A stretch of 63,941 nt of DNA, filler included, from Lenisia limosa (taxonomy: Eukaryota > Protista > Breviatea): assembly GCA_001655205.1 (NCBI GenBank). It is 16 parts of 16 records of this genome, joined end to end, with 100 filler letters (N's around TTAATTAATTAA, not from the genome) between each part and the next. Parts side by side here need not be neighbours in the genome. Positions count along the whole stretch, not along the records: positions 1 to 18,200 come from LPNZ01009456.1; 15 more parts are not named here. One strand, given 5' to 3'. Both the position numbers and the translations under genes were made by a program. This document shows positions 1-18,244 of this stretch, piece by piece (position 1 is the first letter of the stretch; the number at the start of each line of letters is the position of its first letter). The notes under the pieces were generated by a model. The model had not been told where the DNA came from, did not search any database, and saw nothing but the letters and a program-made list of their open reading frames with translations.

Positions 1-1822
1 CCTGCCCACTGTGCACTACAATATGGGCGGCATCCCCACGAACTACCGTGGTGAAGTCCTGACAACCGACGAGGACGGCAATGACGTTGTTGTTCCTGGT
101 GAGTAAGGGAACACGAGGGGATGGGATACTGACTGAAGGGTATCAGGAGGGGAGAAATGAAGTACAAAAGCGATGACGAATTACCTCAACGATCCTCAAT
201 GATTAGAGGGATTTAACATATTACAGGCCTGCTTGCAGCTGGTGAAGCCGCCTGTGCCTCCGTCCATGGTGCTAACCGTCTTGGTGGGGGGGGGGGGNNN
301 NNNNNNNNNNNNNNNNNNNNNNNNNNNNNNNNNNNNNNNNNNNNNNNNNNNNNNNNNNNNNNNNNNNNNNNNNNTCACATCCAGGCGGCAACTCCCTCAT
401 CGACATTGTGGTCTTTGGCCGAGCTTGCTCCCACACTGCTGCTGAGAAGGTCTGCCAGCTGAAAAATGAATCCACTGTTTCTTTACTCGATATTTTCTCA
501 ATTGATTTCGGACAAACTTTCGCCTCTAATGTGAAGTCCACATAATTTAGGATTTTTTTTCTTTCATAAATTCCCTATTACCCCCCCCCCCCCAGTTNNN
601 NNNNNNNNNNNNNNNNNNNNNNNNNNNNNNNNNNNNNNNNNNNNNNNNNNNNNNNNNNNNNNNNNNNNNNNNNNNNNNNNNNNNNNNNNNNNNNNNNNNN
701 NNNNNNNNNNNNNNNNNNNNNNNNNNNNNNNNNNNNNNNNNNNNNNNNNNNNNNNNNNNNNNNNNNNNNNNNNNNNNNNNNNNNNNNNNNNNNNNNNNNN
801 NNNNNNNNNNNNNNNNNNNNNNNNNNNNNNNNNNNNNNNNNNNNNNNNCGACCAGGTTAAAACTTACTCCGTTTACGAATGTGACGTCCACCGCTATTCC
901 ACCTGTTTGATGCATACAGGTCCGCGAGGAAATGCAATGGGCTATGCAACAGCATGCCGCTGTGTTCAGACGTGGAGACATTCTAGAAGAAGGTTGCACC
1001 AAGCTTGACAAGGGTGGGGGGGATTATTGTATTTTTTGTTAACTTTTCATTGACATCCTAAACATGATATTGTGGACTGCTTCGGCTTGAAACAACCTTT
1101 ATTGATTTCGCATTTCGCCGTCCCCAGTATTCCCATTAACAACCATAGTACAAGAGAAGCTGGGCAGTCTACACACTTCCGACCGCTCAATGGAGTGGAA
1201 TACTGATGTCATCGAAACCCTTGAACTGCAGAACCTCATGTCCAATGTAGGCAAAGGGTGTGTCTTGTGCTTTTAGCTTTTATCTTTTGTTACTTCCATT
1301 TCCAATACTTATCCCCCCCCCCCCNNNNNNNNNNNNNNNNNNNNNNNNNNNNNNNNNNNNNNNNNNNNNNNNNNNNNNNNNNNNNNNNNNNNNNNNNNNN
1401 NNNNNNNNNNNNNNNNNNNNNNNNNNNNNNNNNNNNNNNNNNNNNNNNNNNNNNNNNNNGAGCCCACTCAAGAGACGACTTCCCTGAACGTGACGATGAG
1501 AAGTGGATGCACCACACGCTGTCATGGATCGTGGGTTGCGGGTGTGGTCTTGTTTTTGTCCTTTCACCTCTTCCATTATCCCCATTCTCCATTTCCTTCT
1601 CCTTTCGACGTCTCCCTTCCTCCCCTTGGTTTTTGAAATGTTGAGCAGAGTTGATATTGTTCAGGGGGTCCACTTTTATTTTTGCTTAACCTATCCCAAT
1701 CAACCAACCTTACCACCCAGGGTCCTGAAGGCAAGGTCACTTTTGGCCAACGTAAGGTTCAGTCTGAGTCCCTCGACCTCGACGAAATGCCCCACATTCC
1801 GCCCGCCAAGCGTGTGTACTAG
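1..1822 (+). CDS. sdhA: Succinate dehydrogenase/fumarate reductase flavoprotein subunit, 3' part (multi-exon, 5' end outside window)
   Basis: Spliced exons read [95 protein letters not shown]-stop (TAG 1820-1822); these are the canonical SdhA C-terminal motifs. Confidence 0.96.
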
Positions 1823-2084
1823 ATCATCGTTTTATTTATTCTCTGTAGCTCTTAATACATTTTTCTCTCCTTTTTCACAATCCCATAACACAAAACGCTC
1901 GGCTTTTTTTTTTTTTGTTTCACCGTTATTTCAGGTTTCGAATAGTTCGCTGTGTGTGATGCTTGAAAAAAACGCTCAACACCCATACACACCGAGGTGA
2001 AAAGGAAACAATTTAAAAACATCATACACATCACATCAATATACAACCATCAGGACCACGTGTCTGAGTCAACGGCCAAGCCGC

Positions 2085-5000
2085 CTAAAGCACCTGGCCT
2101 TCGCTCCTTTCGTGGTAACGTACGGGGTCGCCCCACTCGTGGAAGCCAACCTCCAAGTCGGCCTGGCGCACTAGATGGGTGAGTTGTAAGAAAACTTTCA
2201 AGGGGAATTGATTCAACAAATGCACATGATTGAGAAAGATTGAGGAAAAGCTGATAGTTAACAAAGAGAGAAAAAAACAATAAATTGACGAATAAAAAGA
2301 GAATCATTGAAAGAACACGGGGAAAGGAAAAAGGAAGACCTAAGAGGTAAACCAAAATAAGAAAGGTAGAGACAAATAGAGAGGAATGGGACGTTATGCT
2401 AAAAAAACAAAACCTGAACAATATTTCACGGGGTGTTACGAGAATATATGAGGGGGGAAAGGAGGGAGGGTGGTGGAAAGCACGGCATTCCAACCTCTGT
2501 CCACAAGGCTGTCGCGAGAAAGAATACGGTCATCAGTAATGCCTGGGCGGTTGTCATAGAGTTGGTAGTACTTGCGGAACTCCAACGTAGTCAAAACTGG
2601 CATAAGCTGGGGGGTAGGGTAAATGAAGCAAACTTCAACGTTTCAAAGGTCATAATCACGAGCCCAAAAGCAAAAAAAAAAAACCAACAACAACATGGGG
2701 ACTAGATGATCCCGTTTCCTCACAATATTTGAGCCACGAGTCAGGGCAATTTCACGACCAGAAGTGTTGAGAGCCTGAAGCATGAGAACTTGTGATTAGC
2801 AAGAAGAAACTGAAGGAGACAAGCAGTCGTTTCAAAAGTAAAAAAGAAGCAAAGGTGAAGAGGCCATCCTACAGCAAGAGCCGTGGAAGCAGCCATATTG
2901 GCGCCGCCCAGGATCATGCGGGTCAAAGCAATAACGCGCGTAGACAGGTCAAACATGCGGCTGGGATGTGAGACGGGGCGGAGGGGTGAAAATGGAACGA
3001 CAGAAAAACAAGAACGAAATATCATACATACAACTTATCTATACTACTTTAGTTCACCCATTGTGATGCATGTTAAATAAGCCAAGGAAGAAGGCATGCA
3101 TGCATGGGAGGTATTGGAGCTGATATATCACTTTTCACACCACTCACTTTTCATGTTCTTCAAGATTGGCGACGGCCTCAGGGAACTCCTTCTCCCACAT
3201 AGCGCCAACAGGAGTTGACGCTTGTGGGCAGTAGGGGCCCATCCTGGACCAGGTCAGTCATCAGAAATAGTTTATATTATGTGGGGGGGGGGGGNNNNNN
3301 NNNNNNNNNNNNNNNNNNNNNNNNNNNNNNNNNNNNNNNNNNNNNNNNNNNNNNNNNNNNNNNNNNNNNNNNNNNNNNNNNNNNNNNNNNNNNNNNNNNN
3401 NNNNNNNNNNNNNNNNNNNNNNNNNNNNACTCGACCTACCCGATCATATCCAACTCCTCGTTTTTGAAGAAGAGAATGTCATCTTTTGAGTGAAAGGTAG
3501 TACAAAAGATTGGGCCAAAAAGAAACGTGTGTTAACAATGAATAAACACTGCGATTCAACAGTAACAACAGAGAGCCGAGGGGGTGGCAAATAAGTAGAA
3601 CAATGGCAAAGCATACTTGCAAGGTCGCTGATAGTTTGAGTAGGCAGACCAATCATGATGCCAGATCCAGTCTGATGGGGGGGGGGGGGNNNNNNNNNNN
3701 NNNNNNNNNNNNNNNNNNNNNNNNNNNNNNNNNNNNNNNNNNNNNNNNNNNNNNNNNNNNNNNNNNNNNNNNNNNNNNNNNNNNNNNNNNNNNNNNNNNN
3801 NNNNNNNNNNGAGGGCTGCCAGGCCAAAAGTCCCCAGCAAACCTGGAAACCAACACGTTTGAGAGATCTGATACACTCCACTCTCTGAAACTATGAAAAC
3901 ACTACCAACAGTACGGACGTAAGAGGGTTATCAAACACTGATAGATAACAAAATGAGAGAACAAATATGTCTTGGTCTAAGATAACACTTGTGATTGTTA
4001 AAACTGTCAACCAGACCTGTTCCCAGCTGTGGTTTCCGTCTTGAGGATGAATGCGATTGTAGAGCCTGGGTTGTGAGGCTATGGCAGTTGACGAATATAT
4101 CATATATTGAATCAACTCACTCTTCACCATGTACTAATTGACATTATATTTGACAATATGGGTTGCTTCACCTCCCAATCCCTCAAAACGCTAGCAATCA
4201 GATAAGTGTATTAGATGCTATCATCATACATTATGTATGATTACATAGTATAAATGATACATGACCCCCCCCCCCCCCNNNNNNNNNNNNNNNNNNNNNN
4301 NNNNNNNNNNNNNNNNNNNNNNNNNNNNNNNNNNNNNNNNNNNNNNNNNNNNNNNNNNNNNNNNNNNNNNNNNNNNNNNNNNNNNNNNNNNNNNNNNNNN
4401 NNNNNNNNNNNNNNNNNNNNNNNNNNNNNNNNNNNNNNNNNNNNNNNNNNNNNNNNNNNCACTCTGAAACCGAAAAAGCACCATTATACCAAATTTCCTA
4501 CCCCCCCCCCATACCAGCCTCCTCAAATCGGCGCTGTTCATCTTCCAAAGTTGAGGCCTTAATGTCTCGAATAGTGTCGCACAGCTTCTTAATGCGATTG
4601 CGGTCTACACAGTTAACAAATATGTCAGTGTGAAGGTCAAACTTCAGTAGACGTTCAATAACTTGTGAGTCCCATACAACCTCATGCCCCCCCACTATTA
4701 ACTTCACCAGACTGGAGCATTATGGAGCCGTAGCCATTTTCATGTGCCCATTGTGTGGCCTCAACCATCTGCAGAAGTCAATGGACGAAATAGATGCAGT
4801 GAGAGGAAGGAAAAGGAGCAAACCGAGAACAGCATTAGAATGGGGAGAAAAGAACACAACTTCAATAAGGACAATAAAAGTAGGACGAGAGAAAAGAAGA
4901 GAAAAATTAAAAAAAAAAAAAAANNNNNNNNNNNNNNNNNNNNNNNNNNNNNNNNNNNNNNNNACCTCTCTACATCAACATCAGCACCAAGTCCGCAGTA

Positions 5001-6049
5001 AAGGCAGTTCTTCTCACACCTAAGGCAGGTAAACAGATGTAGCGAAAGAGTTATTGACAACGAAGAGAGACACCGGGAAAAATATATATATAGCTATCTG
5101 AGCCAAGCATTCCAACCCACATGTTGGAGAATTCGAGGAGGCCTCTGAAGTGGACCTTATTGCTGCAGTACTTGCGCCTGAACAGTCAAAAGATTGACTA
5201 GCAACTGATGTAAAAGTAAATAAAAAGGTTAGGAATTGACTCAGAACAGAAAACCAAATACATCATCTGAGCAAGAAGACCCATGATACACCCCCAGCTC
5301 CATCAACATCCATGCTCACTGTACGGTGTGACTCTGGCGATACATGGCCTTTTCGAGGTCAAGATCATGGGTGGTTAGAAGGCCCTCCAGCTGATCTTTG
5401 GTGAAGTTAATGACCTCTCCAGGCTCGAGGGACGAACAGCCCAGGTAGGCTGCGAGGGGGGCTAAAGCGGTCACAACGCACGGAATCAAGGAGTATTCTA
5501 ATAATTCATAACCATAACTACACCGCTTTGTCAATAGTAAGACACAAGGGTTTAGCAAAAAAACTACTTGAAACTGACTCATGAACTTAGTGATGAATTT
5601 TGTTGGCTGGCAAAAAAGACAATAACAGGACAGACTCGTTCATCAAACACGTGTACCAAACGCCAAAAAAAAGAAATTGGAATTTTGGCAATGGAGATTG
5701 GAAGATTGGCTTATATGTTTAGAATATGGTAATGAATCCAGTGTTAATATGATATTTTGATATGCAGTCAAAGAGGATCAACATTCCAAAGGGTAGACCT
5801 GATAATTGAAGGGTACTGACCATGAAGGCTCCCCGTATTTAGTGTCTTACCAGTTGCTTCTTTATGAGAGCCTTCATTGCGCTCGCGAATCTCCCTTTCA
5901 AGGTCGAAAGGCTGGGAGGTTACAAAATGAGAACGATCAAAAAGATATCAAACCCTAAGGGGAATCTGAAGGCTTGAAAGACTGTGGTGGAAACGACTAA
6001 ACGACTGCCTTACAACACCTGAGACCGACTTTCCAACCAAACCAAACAT
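2085..6049 (-). CDS. hydE: [FeFe]-hydrogenase maturase HydE (radical SAM) with predicted mitochondrial targeting presequence
   Basis: Exons give RKYCSNKVHFRGLLEFSNM|CEKNCLYCGL (CxxxCxxC), WAHENGYGSIMLQSGE, LYNRIHPQDGNHSWEQ|RVECIRSLKRVGFQ|TGSGIMIGLP, DDILFF..LDMIG|MGPYCP, RVIALTRMILGGANMAASTAL, GREIALTRGSNI|LMP, GFHEWGDPVRYH, then stop at 2085-2087. The N-terminus is MFGLVGKSVSGVVRQSFSRFHHSLSSLQIPLR. Confidence 0.88.
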
Positions 6050-6232
6050 TTTTGAGAGGTTAAGCAAAGTATCTCTTGTCCAAATCCAAGGTTTATCTCA
6101 AAGACAATGAGATAACAGCAGAGAGGTCCAATATTTGAATAATGCGCGAAAAAGAGGTGTATATCTGGACCAGTAGATTGTTTTTGAGGAATTTACGGAA
6201 AAGTTTCTGGCCTTTATCCGCTAACCGACACA
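6050..6232. promoter_or_regulatory. Putative bidirectional promoter between hydE and FTHFS (183 bp between start codons)
   Basis: Divergent ATGs at 6049 (-) and 6233 (+); no specific promoter motif identified. Confidence 0.55.
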
Positions 6233-10771
<4,539 letters not shown>

Positions 10772-10962
10772 GCTTCCCACTCGCCCTATGTTTGCATAAT
10801 TTCCTGTTCTTTCTACTATTTATCGTCCATGTATTTCTGTTTTTGGTATCTCCAAACGACTCTCCAAATGGCGTCTCCAAATGGCTTCCATTTGTTTAAT
10901 TTCTCACTTCCACATAGCTCTCTTTCCCCAATAAGTCAATCAAAATTTGTAAATAAAGTGAA

Positions 10963-13454
10963 TTAGAGGAAAACCTTGGATTCACCAGCCACATTTGCGA
11001 TCCAAGAGTAGTAGTAGATTTCCTATCAAAGTTAAAAACGACTTTGGTGGGGAGATAGCCATATGAAAGAAAAACTTGTAAAAAAAGCCCCCCCCTGCGC
11101 CGCCGTACATAAGATGTGGACGCGCCTCTGTGGGATTTGATCACCGTAAACCCAGTGGTGGTGACACTATCAAGCTCTGGGCAGTGACAGGGTGCGGGAT
11201 GGAAGTAAAAGGATACAGGGTTTGGCAGCGAAAAATGAAAGATAAGGAATAGTGAAGGGGGGAAAGACAAGACAACGAGAGCACAGGAGACTGTAATGTT
11301 CATATTCCTGGTCCCCTACGGAGGAGCGTGAGTCCACTGGTCGATACAATGTTGCTGATGATAACAATAGGGGGAGTGGCAAAAGGGGTCGAGAAAGTAA
11401 CTGTTGCCTAAAGCTTGAGTTGTACAATTTTTAAAACTCACAACATAGGAAGATAATTGGCATGTTCAGTATAACGACCCAAGGCCTACTGTATTGGCGA
11501 GTCCCGAAAGAGAAGTGGCAGGTATGACACTGAGGGCAGCGACATTAATAGTATCGCCACTGCAATCATTAGCTGCTGATTTTGAAAACAAAATCCTCTG
11601 ATAGTAGTAATGAATCCTGAACTTTATCAATATGATCAGGTCTTATCCGAGACGTTGCATGAAAAATAATAAGAAAATAGTTCAGTCATACATCTCATCT
11701 ACGAATTGAGTGGCTGTAGGAAGGGAATCCTGTCGTCCCTGTGCTGTCAATTGTACTGAACCATCACAACCCCCACCACAATCCAAAAAGTCATTTTCAA
11801 GAACATGTATCACATTCCCCTAACATATTTGGCTGTGGTTCCCGAAGTGATTGCAGTCATAAAAACCAGCGGTGTTGTGACAAACGGTGTATTAAATATC
11901 GTGATTTCAGTAGAAGGTGTGAAGTTAGTCCAGATCTAAACTCAATTTAGTGGATTGTTATACAAAAGATCTAATATATGCAATGTTTTTCAAAAATAAA
12001 AGTGCAAAAGCCTACTTCGACCTTCCGCTCAGCCCCACTTGTTGGAACATCAATGGCAAGAACGTTCAGTGTCGAGATGGATTTAGCACTCTACAAAAAT
12101 AGGTGATCAGTCTGGAATTCTCCGAATATATAGCTACTACTAGATGTACATATTACAGCATATGTACTAGATATGATATGATATGATATATGATATGATA
12201 TGTATAATATATCATACTATATTATGTCTTTTTAAAGTAACTGGTCAAAATCAATTTGTTAAATCGGGAAATCAAAGTGTAAAAATTCAACAGCAAAGGT
12301 GAACCGCGAACCATAACATGACTGATGTCAACTGAATATGTGTAGAACTCAGGCTGAATGGTGAGATTTGGGGGTAACTCTACCAGATTCAAAGAGGTGT
12401 ATTAAAAACACACTCACAGAAAACGATGAAAACGGTCTGATTAAGCATCCAGCATAAGCGGAGTTCACAACTGAGCAAAAGAATGTCCTCTCATAACCTT
12501 CTTCAACTGCAATTGTGATTCAATTTCAATAAAAGACTGTATATAAACCGAAGAAGCAACAGAAAATATTACACTCAGAGGAAACATACACTCTAACTTG
12601 AAATAGAAAATCCTAAATGGAGTCTGGGCAAAAAGGGAGTGGAAGAGAGAGGTAGCAGAGTATCATTAGTCCAGTTTACCTGCTCCCAAATTGATGATGG
12701 GTGTTGTAGAAGGGTTTGTCTAGACTCAATAAGGGGGGTGGAGTGAGAATTTTGGAAATAGTTATGATTGACTAAAATTGTTGGCTTAGCAAAGAAGAAT
12801 GAAGCCAGAATCAGAAATAAAAAAAAGTGTATCTGATCAAAGCTGTCCATCATACAAAATAGATACCAGGATATGAGAAAGAAAATATCGTCGTAAACCT
12901 GAGAACAGTAAGAATGTGGTTTAGCAATTAAAAATATTATGCTTGTAAATTCTCAGCCCACTTACAATGCTATATGAAGAGAACTTGACATAGCTCTAAA
13001 ACAATCAATGTGAAAGAGGACGATAAGACGAGCAGAGGAACATTCACAATAATACACCCCATACACAAGACCAACCGGTTCGGCAAGTACTGTGGCATTG
13101 AGCATGTCCTAGAACATAAGAATGTACATGAAATGAAACATTGCTGTTTTGGCAATCAACCATCCGATTTTTAAAGGATATCCAGTACCCCCCCCCCCCT
13201 TCCAACAATTTTTGNNNNNNNNNNNNNNNNNNNNNNNNNNNNNNNNNNNNNNNNNNNNNNNNNNNNNNNNNNNNNNNNNNNGTCCTAGAAAAATGAGGGG
13301 GCCTGGGGGAAGACAACCCAAAACTCACAATAGACACTACGCTGGAAGAGCCTTTGAGGACATCTCCGTCCGTTCTAAGGTTAATTGAACAATTTGACAG
13401 TGATATTAAGAGGAATAGTGCACATATAAAAACACCATTAGCCGCAAATAACAT
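10963..13454 (-). CDS. Secreted protein with at least two tandem H-type-lectin-like beta-sandwich repeats at its C-terminus
   Basis: Hydrophobic N-terminus MLFAANGVFICALFLLISLSNC. Phase-consistent last exons give VTFSTPFATPPIVIISNIVSTSGLTLLQLDSVTTTGFTVIKSHRGASTSYEIYYYSWIANVAGESKVFL-stop (10963-10965). An upstream homologous repeat reads FNTPFVTTPLVFMTAITSGTTAKYVRGITIDSTGTTGF. Both resemble the H-type lectin pattern VTF..PF..PP.V..S..VT.TGFT..SW.A from memory (no HMM run). Middle exons are uncertain. Confidence 0.6.
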
Positions 13455-13649
13455 TATTTTGGAAATCTTAAAACTTTAGCCCGATTTATTGGTCTCAATA
13501 GTATCAACAACACATCAACACCCGATCAGCCAGCACCACGTGGTAATTCAATCAGAGGCAAGAATTTTGGTGAATTTTGGTATTTTTCCAGATACCCGGT
13601 CCGGGATAGAGAGTATTTAAACTTAATTTTGTGTCAAAATTATTACAGT
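13455..13649. promoter_or_regulatory. Putative bidirectional promoter between lectin-like gene and double-MACPF gene (195 bp); contains palindromic CCACGTGG (E/G-box-like)
   Basis: Divergent ATGs at 13454 (-) and 13650 (+); CCACGTGG near 13537-13544. Confidence 0.5.
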
Positions 13650-16600
13650 ATGGCACTTACTCAAACGTTTTGTGTCGCATTGGCACTGCTCTTTGCAGCT
13701 GCCTTTGCAAGCTATAATGACTTGAAGCAAATTCCTGGTCTTGATCAGGCTATTGGCCATGGTTACGACCGTGCTTACGACAAGCCTCTTGGTATGATTT
13801 ATATAATGTATATCGCGACTTATTTTTTCAGCTCCTCTTCTGAGATGGTCTTTCGACCAAAAGAAACAATACCGTTCATCCGTAGCTGGTGACATTCAAT
13901 ATTACAAGGTACTGTGTTTTAATCTTGGTCTATATTACGGATTGATTTTTTGACATTCGGCAGGTTCCTGATCAGCTTGAAGTGATTTCTAGTCCCTCTG
14001 CCTACACTCGTGATGAAAGGTAGGCTTTTTATGACAGATTAAAGAGTTTTGAACAATGCCGACCTTTTTTTGGTTTTCTGACCCCTTTAGCTTCTTCTAC
14101 CGCAACATGACTGAGGTTCAGGAGTCACACTACAAGTGGCACAACTTCCACATCGGAATTCCTCATTGTAAGCTTCTCTCTTGTTGTATCCGAGTTCTTG
14201 AATTGACTCTAACCTGCCGCCAGTCCTCTTTGACTTCGAGTATACCGATGCAGCTGGACACATTCGTGACATGCTTGCTGATAACAGCCACATTGTCTAC
14301 CTTAACGAGAGACATTTCTCCTTCTACCGTGGGTGATCTTTTTTTGAATTAAAGTGCCAACCCTCCGTACCTCAGTATTTTATTTTGATGACCATTTCCA
14401 GAGGTTGCTGCTTACCCCATGGGCATTCAACAAGAAAGCCTTGACCCCCGCTTCAAGAAACTTGTAAGCGTTTTCAGACGTGATTGGACATCGCATTTTT
14501 TGGAGCCTTTGTCCTAACCAATCAATCCTTTTATTATTGGTAGTTATCACCCCCTCCTGCTCTTCTTGCGATTTCAATGGGATCACGCTATATCAGTCAT
14601 TTCAATGTTCATCTCTAGCCCTTCCTTCATTTCCTAATCTATCATATCCGGCGGCCAATTTCTCTGTTCTATAAGCCACGCTCTGTCCCTCGTTCGGTCT
14701 CCTTACCCCCCACCCCAGATTGACGGATTCCTCCCCGAGACTTGCACCACCAAGGCCGACCAAGACAAGTACCAGTATGAAACTATTGGATTAACATTAT
14801 TGCACTTCTTAAAGAAGGGTAATCTTACCCCGCATGGGCTTCGTTTTTTTTTTTTTTTTTTCTCAAATNNNNNNNNNNNNNNNNNNNNNNNNNNNNNNNN
14901 NNNNNNNNNNNNNNNNNNNNNNNNNNNNNNNNNNNNNNNNNNNNNNNNGATGGTTTTGGGTATTTTTTTGTTTATATTCTCCATTTTTACCCCCTCAGAC
15001 AGGTCCGTCGCACCTACGGTACTGACTACTCTCCGAACGCCCATTACGGTGGCAAGGCTTCCGTCTTCCAGGTTGTTGACTCCGCCATCTTCCAGAAGTA
15101 CGCACCGGTCTCGTTGTCAACAGCATCTTGTAGCCTCTCCAACCCTGACCTCTTAGGCATACCGAGGACTGGGTCTACCACCAAGTCAGTATGTCGATTG
15201 AGCTCTACTTCATCGGTCTCGGCTTCTCCAGCGGCAAGAACGCTTCCGACATCCACATCGACAAAGACTTCTCCAAGCACGCACACATCATCATCGGTCG
15301 GTTCCCAGCACAATACAATTTGACTCGAATGAGAGGCTGTAGCAATCTGTTTTTGTGACCAGGTTCTTTTATGATGCCCCCTTCCTGACCGCTGCAGAAT
15401 GGGGCGGTGGAAACTCCACTGACGAGGTCAAGGACTACGAGAAGTGGATCCAGCACGTTGAGGTGAGTATGTAATGGTACTGTATAATATGAGAATCATT
15501 CTTATGCGCTCTATTAACTTTTGACCGCCACTCATCACCTGCCATCATCATGTGACCATCCAGACTGAGCCCGTTGCTCTCTACCCCTCTCTCGAGCCTA
15601 TCTACTCCCTCATCAACCACCCCGCCAAGAAGGTCTGCATGCAAGCCGAGGTTAGCCGGGAGGGTCTGCATGCAAGTGTATTTAAACAATATTTGCGTTA
15701 GCTCTAAATAAACGTTGTTCTCCTTCTCACACTACAGATCACTCGCTACCTCTCCAAGGACCCTAAGAAGGACAAGGCCACCTCCTTTGCCCTCAGCGCC
15801 TCCTCCACTGACGACCTCCCCGTCATCCCAGGACTTCGCTCTGGTGTCGGCCTTGGTAGGCTTGGGGGGGGGGGTGTCTTCTGATCTGCAGATCGTGATA
15901 GCTCCATCTGATTTATTATTATTATTATTGATATTATTTTTATTTGTTTTGTCTCAAACATAATTATCATTTCCTCACCCCCAGGTTACGATATTGCCAC
16001 CGAGCAGCTCCGTCAAGGTGTGACCGGTGAGTACACCTACGAGTACGGCCAGACCTGGACTTGCCCCCTCAACAAGAAAACCTACAAGGTTTGTAACTCT
16101 GTTTTTTTCAACTGCCTTTTCTAAGCAGAGGACCTTGGCCCCAAAAGCTATTTATTTCACACCACAGGTTCCCGACCAAGTTACCCTTACCGAGACTCCC
16201 TCAGGAAAGATTGACCTCGACCGTGTTGTCACCAAGAACTGGGAGTCTTACCAGGTATGCTCTTCCTCAGCCTTTTTATTCGCTTGTTTCGAAACAGTTA
16301 TTTCTGCACTATTGTTGATTTTGGGCTATTCCCGTATTTCTGTGCTGCGGAAGCGACTGGCCTGGCCTCATGTGTTATCAGCCAACAGNNNNNNNNNNNN
16401 NNNNNNNNNNNNNNNNNNNNNNNNNNNNNNNNNNNNNNNNNNNNNNNNNNNNNNNNNNNNNNNNNNNNNNNNNNNNNNNNNNNNNNNNNNNNNNNNNNNN
16501 NNNNNNNNNNNNNNNNNNNNNNNNNNGACGGCGTCAACGCCGAGGGCACCTTCAAGCGCACTTCCCATGAGATTGACGGCTATCTCAAGGTCTGACTCAG

Positions 16601-18144
16601 CTCATCTGCTTCTGTTTTTTTTTTTGTTTTTTGTTCTTTTTGCTTTTGCTTGTTAGTGGACCGAAGACAGCTTAGCTTGTATTATTAAAGGAAAACAACC
16701 ATATTAAACCTAGGCGCCTCCCTTCACTGACCTTCAGAACCACACCCGCTCTCTGTCCATTGAGACCCGTGCTCTCTCCATCTACCAACTGGACGCCAAC
16801 TTCGGCTCTCCTTTCACGTAGGCTGCCATCTTATTCTTTCATCATATCTCTTCACAGCCTTCCGATGCTCCATCTTCCCTTTCTTCATATTTGGCACCTT
16901 TGATTCCACTCAGTCGCAACTTCGCCAACGCTATCCGCATTCTCCCCAAGACCCTTGACTCCGCTTCTGACAAGGCCATTTACACGTGGGCGAGGGGTTG
17001 CATATATCCTTCCTGCTTCTGAACATCGCGGAAGACCGAATGTGACCAAACAGTCGCTTCCTGAAGTCCTTCGGAACCCACTACGTCGTTTCCGCCGACT
17101 ACGGAGGAAAGCTCAACGTCACGTGAGAGGGCTTTTGTCATTTTTGTTGCTTTTTTCATCTTTGCTCTTCTTCTTTTCCCCAGAAGCGGTTTAGCCTCCC
17201 TCTGTGTAATTTCCACAGCATTGCCTACAACCTCGACCTTCTTGATAAGTACGACGCCCAATGGGTTGACACCCAGATCGACCTTGCCGTCACCTGGGGT
17301 GGGCAGGGCTTGTGCTTTATGTTTTTGGACTATCAGAGTACGCACAAGATATCTTCTTCTCACGTTGGAGTTCTTTGACTGATACAGGTGAAATCAACGC
17401 TGGTATTCACTCCGAGCGCAACGAAACCACCAAGCACAACTCTGAGGATTTCACTGTGGGGGGGGGGGGGTCTTGTCGATGTTATAAGTTGGTATGTCCA
17501 CGCCACCCCTTTCTTTACTCTGGCCCCTTGCTTTACTCTGGCCTAGGAGCATTCCGACACTATCGTCGAGCATGTTGGTGGTACTGGAGACTACGACAAC
17601 GATAAGGACTATGAAAAGTGGGTAGAACGTTATCAAAATAATCCTTTGTTTCTGTTTCCGTTCGTTCTTCTCCAAGCCTTGGCGTAACCCCCCCTCCCCA
17701 GGTGGGCCTCAAGCCTCATGGACTGGCCCGGATGGATCCAGGAGAAGACCATTCTCATGCCCATCACTGACGTCATTGACGACCCTGTATGCTGCTTACT
17801 ATATTTGGAATGCCGCATTAGGCTGCCTATCTCAGTTGTTCCCACTTTCCTTGTTTTGAGTCACTTACCATATTAGGAAGTTGCTGCTAACGTTGCCACC
17901 ATGGCTGTGGAATACATCAACGCCAACGCCAAGCCTAAGGTAAGAAAATGTCATCTGTGAACCTTGACAAAGCTCCATTCTTCCCTTCCCCTCGATCTTT
18001 TACACCCATCAGTATCGTAATTCTAATCATCACTATCATCCGAGGAGTTACCTGAGATTGTATTTTCCATAATTTCACACTTCAGGTCCAGGCACCTCCC
18101 ACTTTCAAGCCCCGCGCTGACCACGCCACCCCCGAATGGCCCGG
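13650..18144 (+). CDS. Secreted perforin-like protein with two tandem MACPF domains (3' end lost at linker)
   Basis: Signal peptide MALTQTFCVALALLFAAAFA. Domain 1 runs IPGLDQAIGHGYD..YK|VPDQL..YGTDYSPNAHYGG (15015-15053)..GGGN..YEKWIQHV..PVALYPSLEPIYSLI. Domain 2 runs IPGLRSGVGLGYD..YK|VPDQV..FGTHYVVSADYGG (17070-17108)..VGG..YEKWASS..LMPITDVI. Both fit the MACPF signature (Y/W/F)G(T/S)H(F/Y)x6GG, with D for H in domain 1. Confidence 0.88.
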
Positions 18145-18244
18145 GTAGGAGGGCTGCAACGGGTCTGTTCATTATTGGCTTCGTCATCTTGCCATCATCA
18201 NNNNNNNNNNNNNNNNNNNNNNNNNNNNNNNNNNNNNNNNNNNN

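Follow-up and report, generated by a model that had tools for sequence, protein, structure and literature searches.

Do two genes that lie head to head in a protist genome, one for a lectin-like protein and one for a tandem-MACPF protein, encode a single two-component toxin, or are they separate genes that happen to be neighbors? This question is raised by a locus of Lenisia limosa, which is described as an anaerobic breviate amoeboflagellate living with Arcobacter epibionts (PMC12453579). The window (i.e., the whole stretch of DNA analyzed; 63,941 nt, filler included) is composed of 16 parts of this genome, and its positions 1-18200, where both genes are located, correspond to the entire contig C9456 of a 49-Mb assembly with 11,727 contigs. 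An earlier note on this DNA had proposed an AB-type pore-forming toxin, in which the lectin-like protein would be the targeting subunit of the MACPF protein. We lean toward a different reading, in which the two genes are independent or merely co-regulated neighbors rather than the halves of an obligate AB complex. At most, their products would be co-regulated members of one secreted repertoire.

The two genes and their products

Both genes are real and expressed. Spliced RNA contigs were found for each of them in one polyA RNA library, which originates from the same study as the genome. The minus-strand contig (1039 nt) starts at 13531 and has pieces at 13531-13328 and 11935-11824; therefore, the leader exon is joined to the lectin-like exons. 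The plus-strand contig (3975 nt) begins at 13654; as far as position 16254, its joints establish 13 clean GT-AG introns, in agreement with the exons read by eye, and one further joint crosses the third assembly gap of the locus. The start codons, at 13454 on the minus strand and at 13650 on the plus strand, are separated by exactly the 195 nt (13455-13649, read directly from the sequence) that the earlier note had given. The two separate genes would be transcribed divergently from a promoter region of approximately 120 to 195 bp. The hydrophobic, signal-peptide-like starts claimed for both products were likewise recovered: when Kyte-Doolittle hydropathy is averaged over 15 residues, the N-terminal 30 residues peak at 2.47 in the lectin-like protein and at 2.44 in the MACPF protein, while no window elsewhere in either protein exceeds 1.75. 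Both products are accordingly of a secreted type, as far as such leaders predict secretion.

The 195-bp intergenic region contains a CACGTG palindrome (13537-13542), just beyond the 5' end of the minus-strand RNA contig (13531), and a TATTTAAA box (13614-13621) approximately 30 nt upstream of the plus-strand ATG. The exons of the lectin-like gene have a G+C content of 44%, and those of the MACPF gene have a G+C content of 53%. The word depths of the RNA contigs are 41 (lectin-like) and 254 (MACPF), although contig depth is a poor gauge of expression.

The plus gene encodes a protein with at least two MACPF domains; the earlier note had recognized two. The MACPF signature is (Y/W/F)-G-T-H-(F/Y)-x6-G-G, and domain 2 fits it with FGTHY, VVSADY, and GG. 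The 22-aa exon that carries this signature (FGTHYVVSADYGGK; 17055-17120) scores 27.1 bits against PF01823 by itself (E = 5.7e-6; cut-off, 21.5 bits) and 23.8 bits in a six-frame scan of the genome. The two domains are 28% identical to each other over 159 aa (E = 2e-18), and they have in common an IPGL...GYD...YK/VPDQ opening (E = 1e-5). A whole-genome Pfam scan at the default E value detected no MACPF domain because the exons are too short; at an E value of 10, the scan detected the window exon and one other contig (C9980, described below). No paralogue of a domain-1 exon was found in the genome. The coding sequence of approximately 2 kb is interrupted by at least 23 introns of 40 to 272 nt, with exons of 56 to 142 nt. 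Two intron positions are common to both domains (i.e., one preceding VPDQ and one lying six residues ahead of the G in GT(H/D)Y), which suggests that the duplication copied the introns along with the domain.

By sequence, this protein belongs to a small family of putatively secreted double-MACPF proteins (648 to 679 aa). An exhaustive protein search with a two-row profile, which was built from a MACPF exon and a lectin exon and simulated beforehand for both targets, retrieved two MACPF relatives together with the lectin-like protein, which is designated P0001. Exhaustive and word searches together yielded P0003 (679 aa), P0004 (648 aa), and P0005-P0009, all of which carry PF01823 (two stretches each in P0003 and P0004; 145 and 163 bits, respectively). 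Over approximately 660 residues, the window protein aligns collinearly with P0004 and P0003 at 27 to 29% identity (E = 1e-106 and 6e-95, respectively). P0003, P0004, and P0005 are complete double-MACPF open reading frames (ORFs) flanked by untranslated regions; the relatives are known from transcript contigs alone, which hold no gene neighbors. A hydrophobic leader precedes the conserved IPGL motif in P0003-P0006 and P0008. The C-termini of P0003 and P0005 (...GVIPGI and ...GIIPGN) resemble the IPG(L) motif found at the start of each MACPF unit in the family, and these ends look like the remnant of a further repeat. The full-length Lenisia MACPF protein was recovered neither by the two-row-profile search nor by a word search with the relatives and exon fragments; it may be longer than the length window of the search.

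The family is related to perforin, the complement components C6-C9, and MPEG1 through both halves of its profile, the low-confidence fold model of one relative, and the G-T-H-Y-x6-G-G of domain 2. The second half of the family profile matches perforin-1 (E = 1.8e-14), while the first half matches C8 beta (E = 4.6e-13) and C6; matches to C9, MPEG1, TgPLP1, and pleurotolysin B (PlyB; E = 3.7e-7) were also obtained. The structures matched by Foldseek with a model of P0004 (mean predicted local distance difference test [pLDDT] score, 52.8) are solely MACPF structures (E = 1e-11 to 1e-12), and they include perforin, C6, Plu-MACPF, GNIP1Aa, and astrotactin-2. Unlike these known systems, the Lenisia protein comes from a breviate, contains two complete MACPF domains per chain, and lacks C2, TSP, LDLa, EGF, MABP, and beta-prism accessory domains. 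No accessory domain was detected anywhere in the family, whose members consist of two MACPF domains only. The searched literature contains no paper on a "tandem," "double," or "dual" MACPF protein, and "two MACPF domains" refers there only to the two-chain C8 alpha/beta heteromer.

On this basis, each half of the protein would be a complete perforin-type domain, and the chain would have no accessory membrane-binding domain. The protein, either secreted or delivered into phagosomes, may oligomerize on a target membrane, with each chain giving the hairpins of its two MACPF domains to a beta-barrel pore, and it may function in the killing of bacterial prey or in cell defense. Non-lytic MACPF proteins also exist. 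Like astrotactins or Torso-like, the tandem-MACPF protein could have a non-pore role (e.g., in adhesion, signaling, or development), in which case one of its domains would be a degenerate scaffold. Domain 1 reads YGTDY, SPNAHY, and GG, so that Asp replaces the signature His; its signature exon (14999-15097) alone has no Pfam match, and astrotactin-2 is among the fold matches noted above. However, the full signature is kept in domain 2, the His is retained in domain 1 of the relatives, and alternating hydrophobic and polar stretches are present at the membrane-hairpin sites of both halves (as judged by eye). The predicted secretion of the protein by a bacterivorous phagotroph also argues for lysis, and we regard a non-lytic role as decidedly unlikely.

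Where the plus gene ends affects how many domains its product has. With TAG at 18145-18147 as its stop, the protein has approximately 682 residues, which is similar to the length of its relatives. However, this TAG coincides in part with a sequence that is plausible as a splice donor (GG|GTAGGA; GTAGGC is found at three confirmed donors of the gene), and the RNA contig exceeds the coding sequence up to 18147 by approximately 1.9 kb. A single further MACPF locus exists in the genome, contig C9980 (L014, 1-5648, minus strand), which starts mid-domain at the contig end and carries two more MACPF domains (IGTHYISAAQFGG and VGTHYWATTRLGG), each of the same type as domain 2. No contig bridging the end of the window contig and C9980 was found. 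Judging from these sequences, C9980 could with about equal probability be the continuation of the plus gene, which would then encode three or four MACPF domains, or a paralogue.

The minus gene encodes P0001, an orphan protein of 310 aa. After its leader, P0001 would have a brief helical segment and a middle part rich in beta structure, and it would end in an H-type-lectin-like domain. P0001 is identical to a Lenisia limosa Trinity ORF among the EukProt transcriptome proteins, and exon-by-exon mapping to the whole genome places it solely at 10963-13531. The exhaustive search matched it at residues 164-199, where a partial exon model had placed the exon. Exon chains derived from binned RNA coverage were ambiguous until P0001 was found, with hundreds to thousands of GT-AG chains fitting the data. 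The PF09458 (H_lectin) profile aligns to residues 239-300 over its positions 1-66 of 67, with 22.5 bits for the whole protein (E = 1.3e-4; below the cut-off of 24 bits) and 25.8 bits for residues 230-310 alone (E = 1.1e-5; above the cut-off). The best PDB sequence matches are the Helix pomatia agglutinin (HPA) and the Helix aspersa agglutinin (E = 0.1), and the three nearest clusters in an ESM Atlas feature search are all H_lectin (score, 0.79, which is weak). PF09458 is therefore the top family in the Pfam, PDB sequence, and language-model searches, with every score marginal, and the C-terminal domain of P0001 very probably has the H-type-lectin fold. A single-sequence AlphaFold2 model was unusable (mean pLDDT, 37).

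These results bear out the gene identities given in the earlier note (i.e., a secreted double-MACPF protein and a secreted lectin-like protein), with a marginal score in the case of the lectin. The claim of at least two lectin repeats is borne out only in part. One domain has support at the Pfam threshold, whereas the similarity of residues 164-238 to it is limited to their opening 28 residues, which can be aligned with the beginning of that domain (z = 4.7; a score reached by 0 of 500 shuffles), and residues 160-240 have no Pfam match even at an E value of 10. The second repeat is thus a 28-residue motif. Like HPA and discoidin, P0001 has an F-x-x-P-F-x-x-P-P-V start and a T-G-F strand in a domain that covers the profile; it differs from them in that this domain ends an orphan protein that also contains helical sequence near its N-terminus and an additional, degenerate repeat. 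A similarity of the N-terminus to serine acetyltransferase (E = 0.05) was dismissed as meaningless.

P0001 probably forms oligomers that bind to glycans or cell surfaces. Alternatively, its beta-sandwich may not be a lectin at all but a tail-fiber-like structural or tip domain for attachment (e.g., of epibiotic bacteria), unrelated to the MACPF gene. Lenisia carries Arcobacter epibionts (PMC12453579). PHROGs tail-fiber families (E = 6e-4) and Gp53-like_C match the same C-terminal stretch, the Pfam score lies just at the threshold, and the sugar contacts of HPA are not kept. The GalNAc contacts of HPA, which we take to be N61, R63, and H84 in accordance with the chain numbering, stand opposite G, T, and A in the P0001 sequence in a phmmer alignment to 2ce6 whose loops are of low confidence. 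On the other hand, binding residues vary among many H-type lectins, and PF09458 is the best match in all three kinds of search. We therefore consider a tail-fiber-like domain very unlikely.

H_lectin-like exons were also observed at nine other loci of the genome (L001-L007, L009, and L010), where they match the first 20 to 30 profile positions (E = 0.08 to 2.7). These exons are a hint that H-type-lectin-like genes are scattered over the genome of Lenisia limosa. The nine loci include no close paralogue of P0001 and are all on contigs other than the MACPF contigs.

One system or two neighbors

Lectins and other small binders are known to direct MACPF proteins to membranes. In pleurotolysin, the MACPF component PlyB cannot target membranes alone and relies on PlyA, a small aegerolysin that binds lipid, onto which the C-terminal trefoil of PlyB docks. 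The apple-snail toxin PV2 is a demonstrated disulfide-linked heterodimer of a tachylectin-like lectin chain and a single-domain MACPF chain. If the Lenisia pair were a true two-component system of this kind, the lectin-like protein would bind a target glycan and recruit or activate the tandem-MACPF protein. The resemblance to PV2 lies in the joining of a lectin-type protein and a MACPF protein that are both of a secreted kind, and that to pleurotolysin would lie in a MACPF part that depends on a small, separate binder. The Lenisia pair differs from PV2 in its H-type-lectin-like domain and its tandem MACPF domains, and it is known as two adjacent genes, whereas PV2 is known as a linked complex. 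It differs from pleurotolysin in having neither an aegerolysin partner (no aegerolysin match was found for P0001 in Pfam at an E value of 1) nor a PlyB-type trefoil.

Several observations weigh against our reading of the genes as mere neighbors. The genes are arranged head to head with only 195 bp between their start codons, the putative promoter region is very short, and both transcripts are present in one library. A MACPF protein without a targeting domain of its own is one for which a partner would make sense, and pairs of a lectin and a pore former do exist in nature, as PV2 illustrates (PMC3667788, PMC7082926). In addition, the lack of detectable relatives of P0001 in a word search of 5.8 billion proteins is weak evidence because such a search is blind to kin at 28% identity, and the MACPF relatives are themselves at approximately this level. 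The leaders on both products fit a two-component system as well, as does the small number of H_lectin-like exons, since a chance neighbor of the lectin-like kind would be uncommon with approximately 10 other such loci in 49 Mb.

Other observations point to neighbors. The residues with which HPA binds sugar are replaced in the aligned P0001 sequence, and P0001 lacks both detectable relatives and a paralogue in the genome, while the MACPF family has at least six relatives, which include free-standing, complete ORFs. No lectin-like exon is present on the 5.6-kb contig C9980, the 5' side of which is cut at the contig end. In the compact genome of Lenisia, which is gene-dense and extremely intron-rich, divergent neighbors are the rule. 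At this locus, a formate-tetrahydrofolate ligase gene (PF01268; plus strand, approximately 7000-10700) is positioned tail to tail with the lectin-like gene at a distance of approximately 250 bp (exon ORFs, 8306-8662 [E = 4.9e-25] and 9899-10192 [E = 9.6e-14]). It is an unrelated housekeeping neighbor, and tight gene spacing is therefore normal here.

What speaks for an AB-type toxin is thus head-to-head adjacency in a gene-dense genome and one shared RNA library, and we judge a true two-component system to be unlikely. A more specific version, in which the tandem-MACPF protein is a single-chain, built-in heterodimer (cf. C8 alpha/beta) targeted to glycans by an oligomeric lectin-like protein, with up to four domains if C9980 continues the chain, appears distinctly improbable. 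Independent or merely co-regulated genes remain the reading that we favor. The remark in the earlier note that such a pairing appeared to be undescribed agrees with the searched literature, in which no paper pairs a MACPF protein with an H-type lectin as a system. The breviate paper that was checked mentions neither a lectin nor a perforin, and no paper was found that cites the run accessions of the MACPF relatives.

Gene models and assembly gaps

Table 1. Features of the lectin-like and tandem-MACPF genes and of the region between them (positions in the window)
Feature	Position	Strand	Basis or remark
Minus gene, predicted secreted lectin-like protein P0001 (310 aa, 14 exons)	10963..13531	-	Unique GT-AG chain translates exactly to P0001
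P0001 exons 1-5	13531 (ATG 13454)-13329; 13284-13207; 13108-13076; 12995-12966; 12719-12680	-	
P0001 exons 6-10	12506-12418; 12353-12312; 12090-12016; 11935-11825; 11738-11692	-	
P0001 exons 11-14	11559-11490; 11407-11320; 11176-11109; 11022-10963 (stop)	-	
Leader of P0001, signal-peptide-like, residues ~1-22	13389..13454	-	Hydropathy maximum, 2.47; sole hydrophobic segment
Exon 2, helix-like stretch of 18 residues, spans gap 13215-13281	13207..13284	-	54 nt in total
C-terminal H-type-lectin-like domain, P0001 residues 239-300 (three exons)	10996..11407	-	PF09458
Degenerate second repeat, P0001 residues 164-238	11490..11935	-	28-residue motif, z = 4.7
Putative shared divergent promoter region (195 bp)	13455..13649	.	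Read from sequence; RNA contig ends at 13531 (minus) and 13654 (plus)
Plus gene, predicted secreted tandem-MACPF protein (at least 24 exons, ~682 aa to TAG 18145-18147)	13650..18147	+	13 RNA-confirmed introns; open frames
Plus-gene exons 1-14 (425 residues)	13650 to 16254	+	
Plus gene, ten further exons (236 residues)	16527 to 18144	+	
Leader of MACPF protein, signal-peptide-like, residues ~1-20	13650..13709	+	Hydropathy maximum, 2.44
MACPF domain 1	13731..15824	+	Variant signature YGTDYSPNAHYGGK in exon 14999-15097
MACPF domain 2	15825..18144	+	Canonical signature FGTHYVVSADYGGK in exon 17054-17122
Gap interrupting minus-gene exon 2 (coding)	13215-13281	-	Spanning DNA contig is 24 nt shorter: true length 43 nt, not 67
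Gap within an intron	14869-14948	.	Skipped by RNA joint 14774 to 14999 (GT..AG); intron 14775-14998
Gap hiding ~20 codons of MACPF domain 2	16389-16526	.	Bridged by the RNA contig, which runs from 16254 to 16736 with unplaced letters in the interval

Three assembly gaps fall within the two genes (Table 1). In exon 2 of the minus gene, the corrected gap of 43 nt is preceded by GAC (3 nt) and followed by another 8 nt, and the total of 54 nt corresponds to the 18 residues of P0001 at this place; the exon is therefore continuous and in frame across the gap. In the plus gene, the alignment to P0004 leaves approximately 21 residues unaccounted for between the exons 16168-16254 and 16527-16589, and X was kept at this break when the product was analyzed. 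Two of these gaps lie next to homopolymer runs (C12 and T20; edges including 13189-13214 and 14846-14868). Homopolymers are probably where the assembly broke, and the gap lengths are unreliable. An intron of the minus gene contains an imperfect (GATAT/GATATGATAT)n microsatellite (12162-12227).

Significance of the double-MACPF family and of the pairing

Both domain families at this locus were already known; what is unusual is the all-MACPF tandem architecture, the orphan status of P0001, and the pairing itself. What is firmly gained is a pair of accurate gene models together with a newly recognized double-MACPF family, while the pairing provides a testable hypothesis. If the lectin-like protein were the targeting subunit, the pair would represent a second, independent invention of the PV2-type design of a lectin and a MACPF protein, in this case in a free-living anaerobic bacterivore. 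A single-chain tandem acting with a lectin-like partner would constitute a new protist two-component MACPF system. MACPF proteins usually combine one pore-forming domain with accessory domains that find the target. A conserved family of putatively secreted proteins composed of two MACPF domains and nothing else raises the questions of how its members are targeted and how the two domains of one chain enter one barrel. The answers could inform our understanding of the stepwise heteromeric assembly of the complement membrane attack complex.

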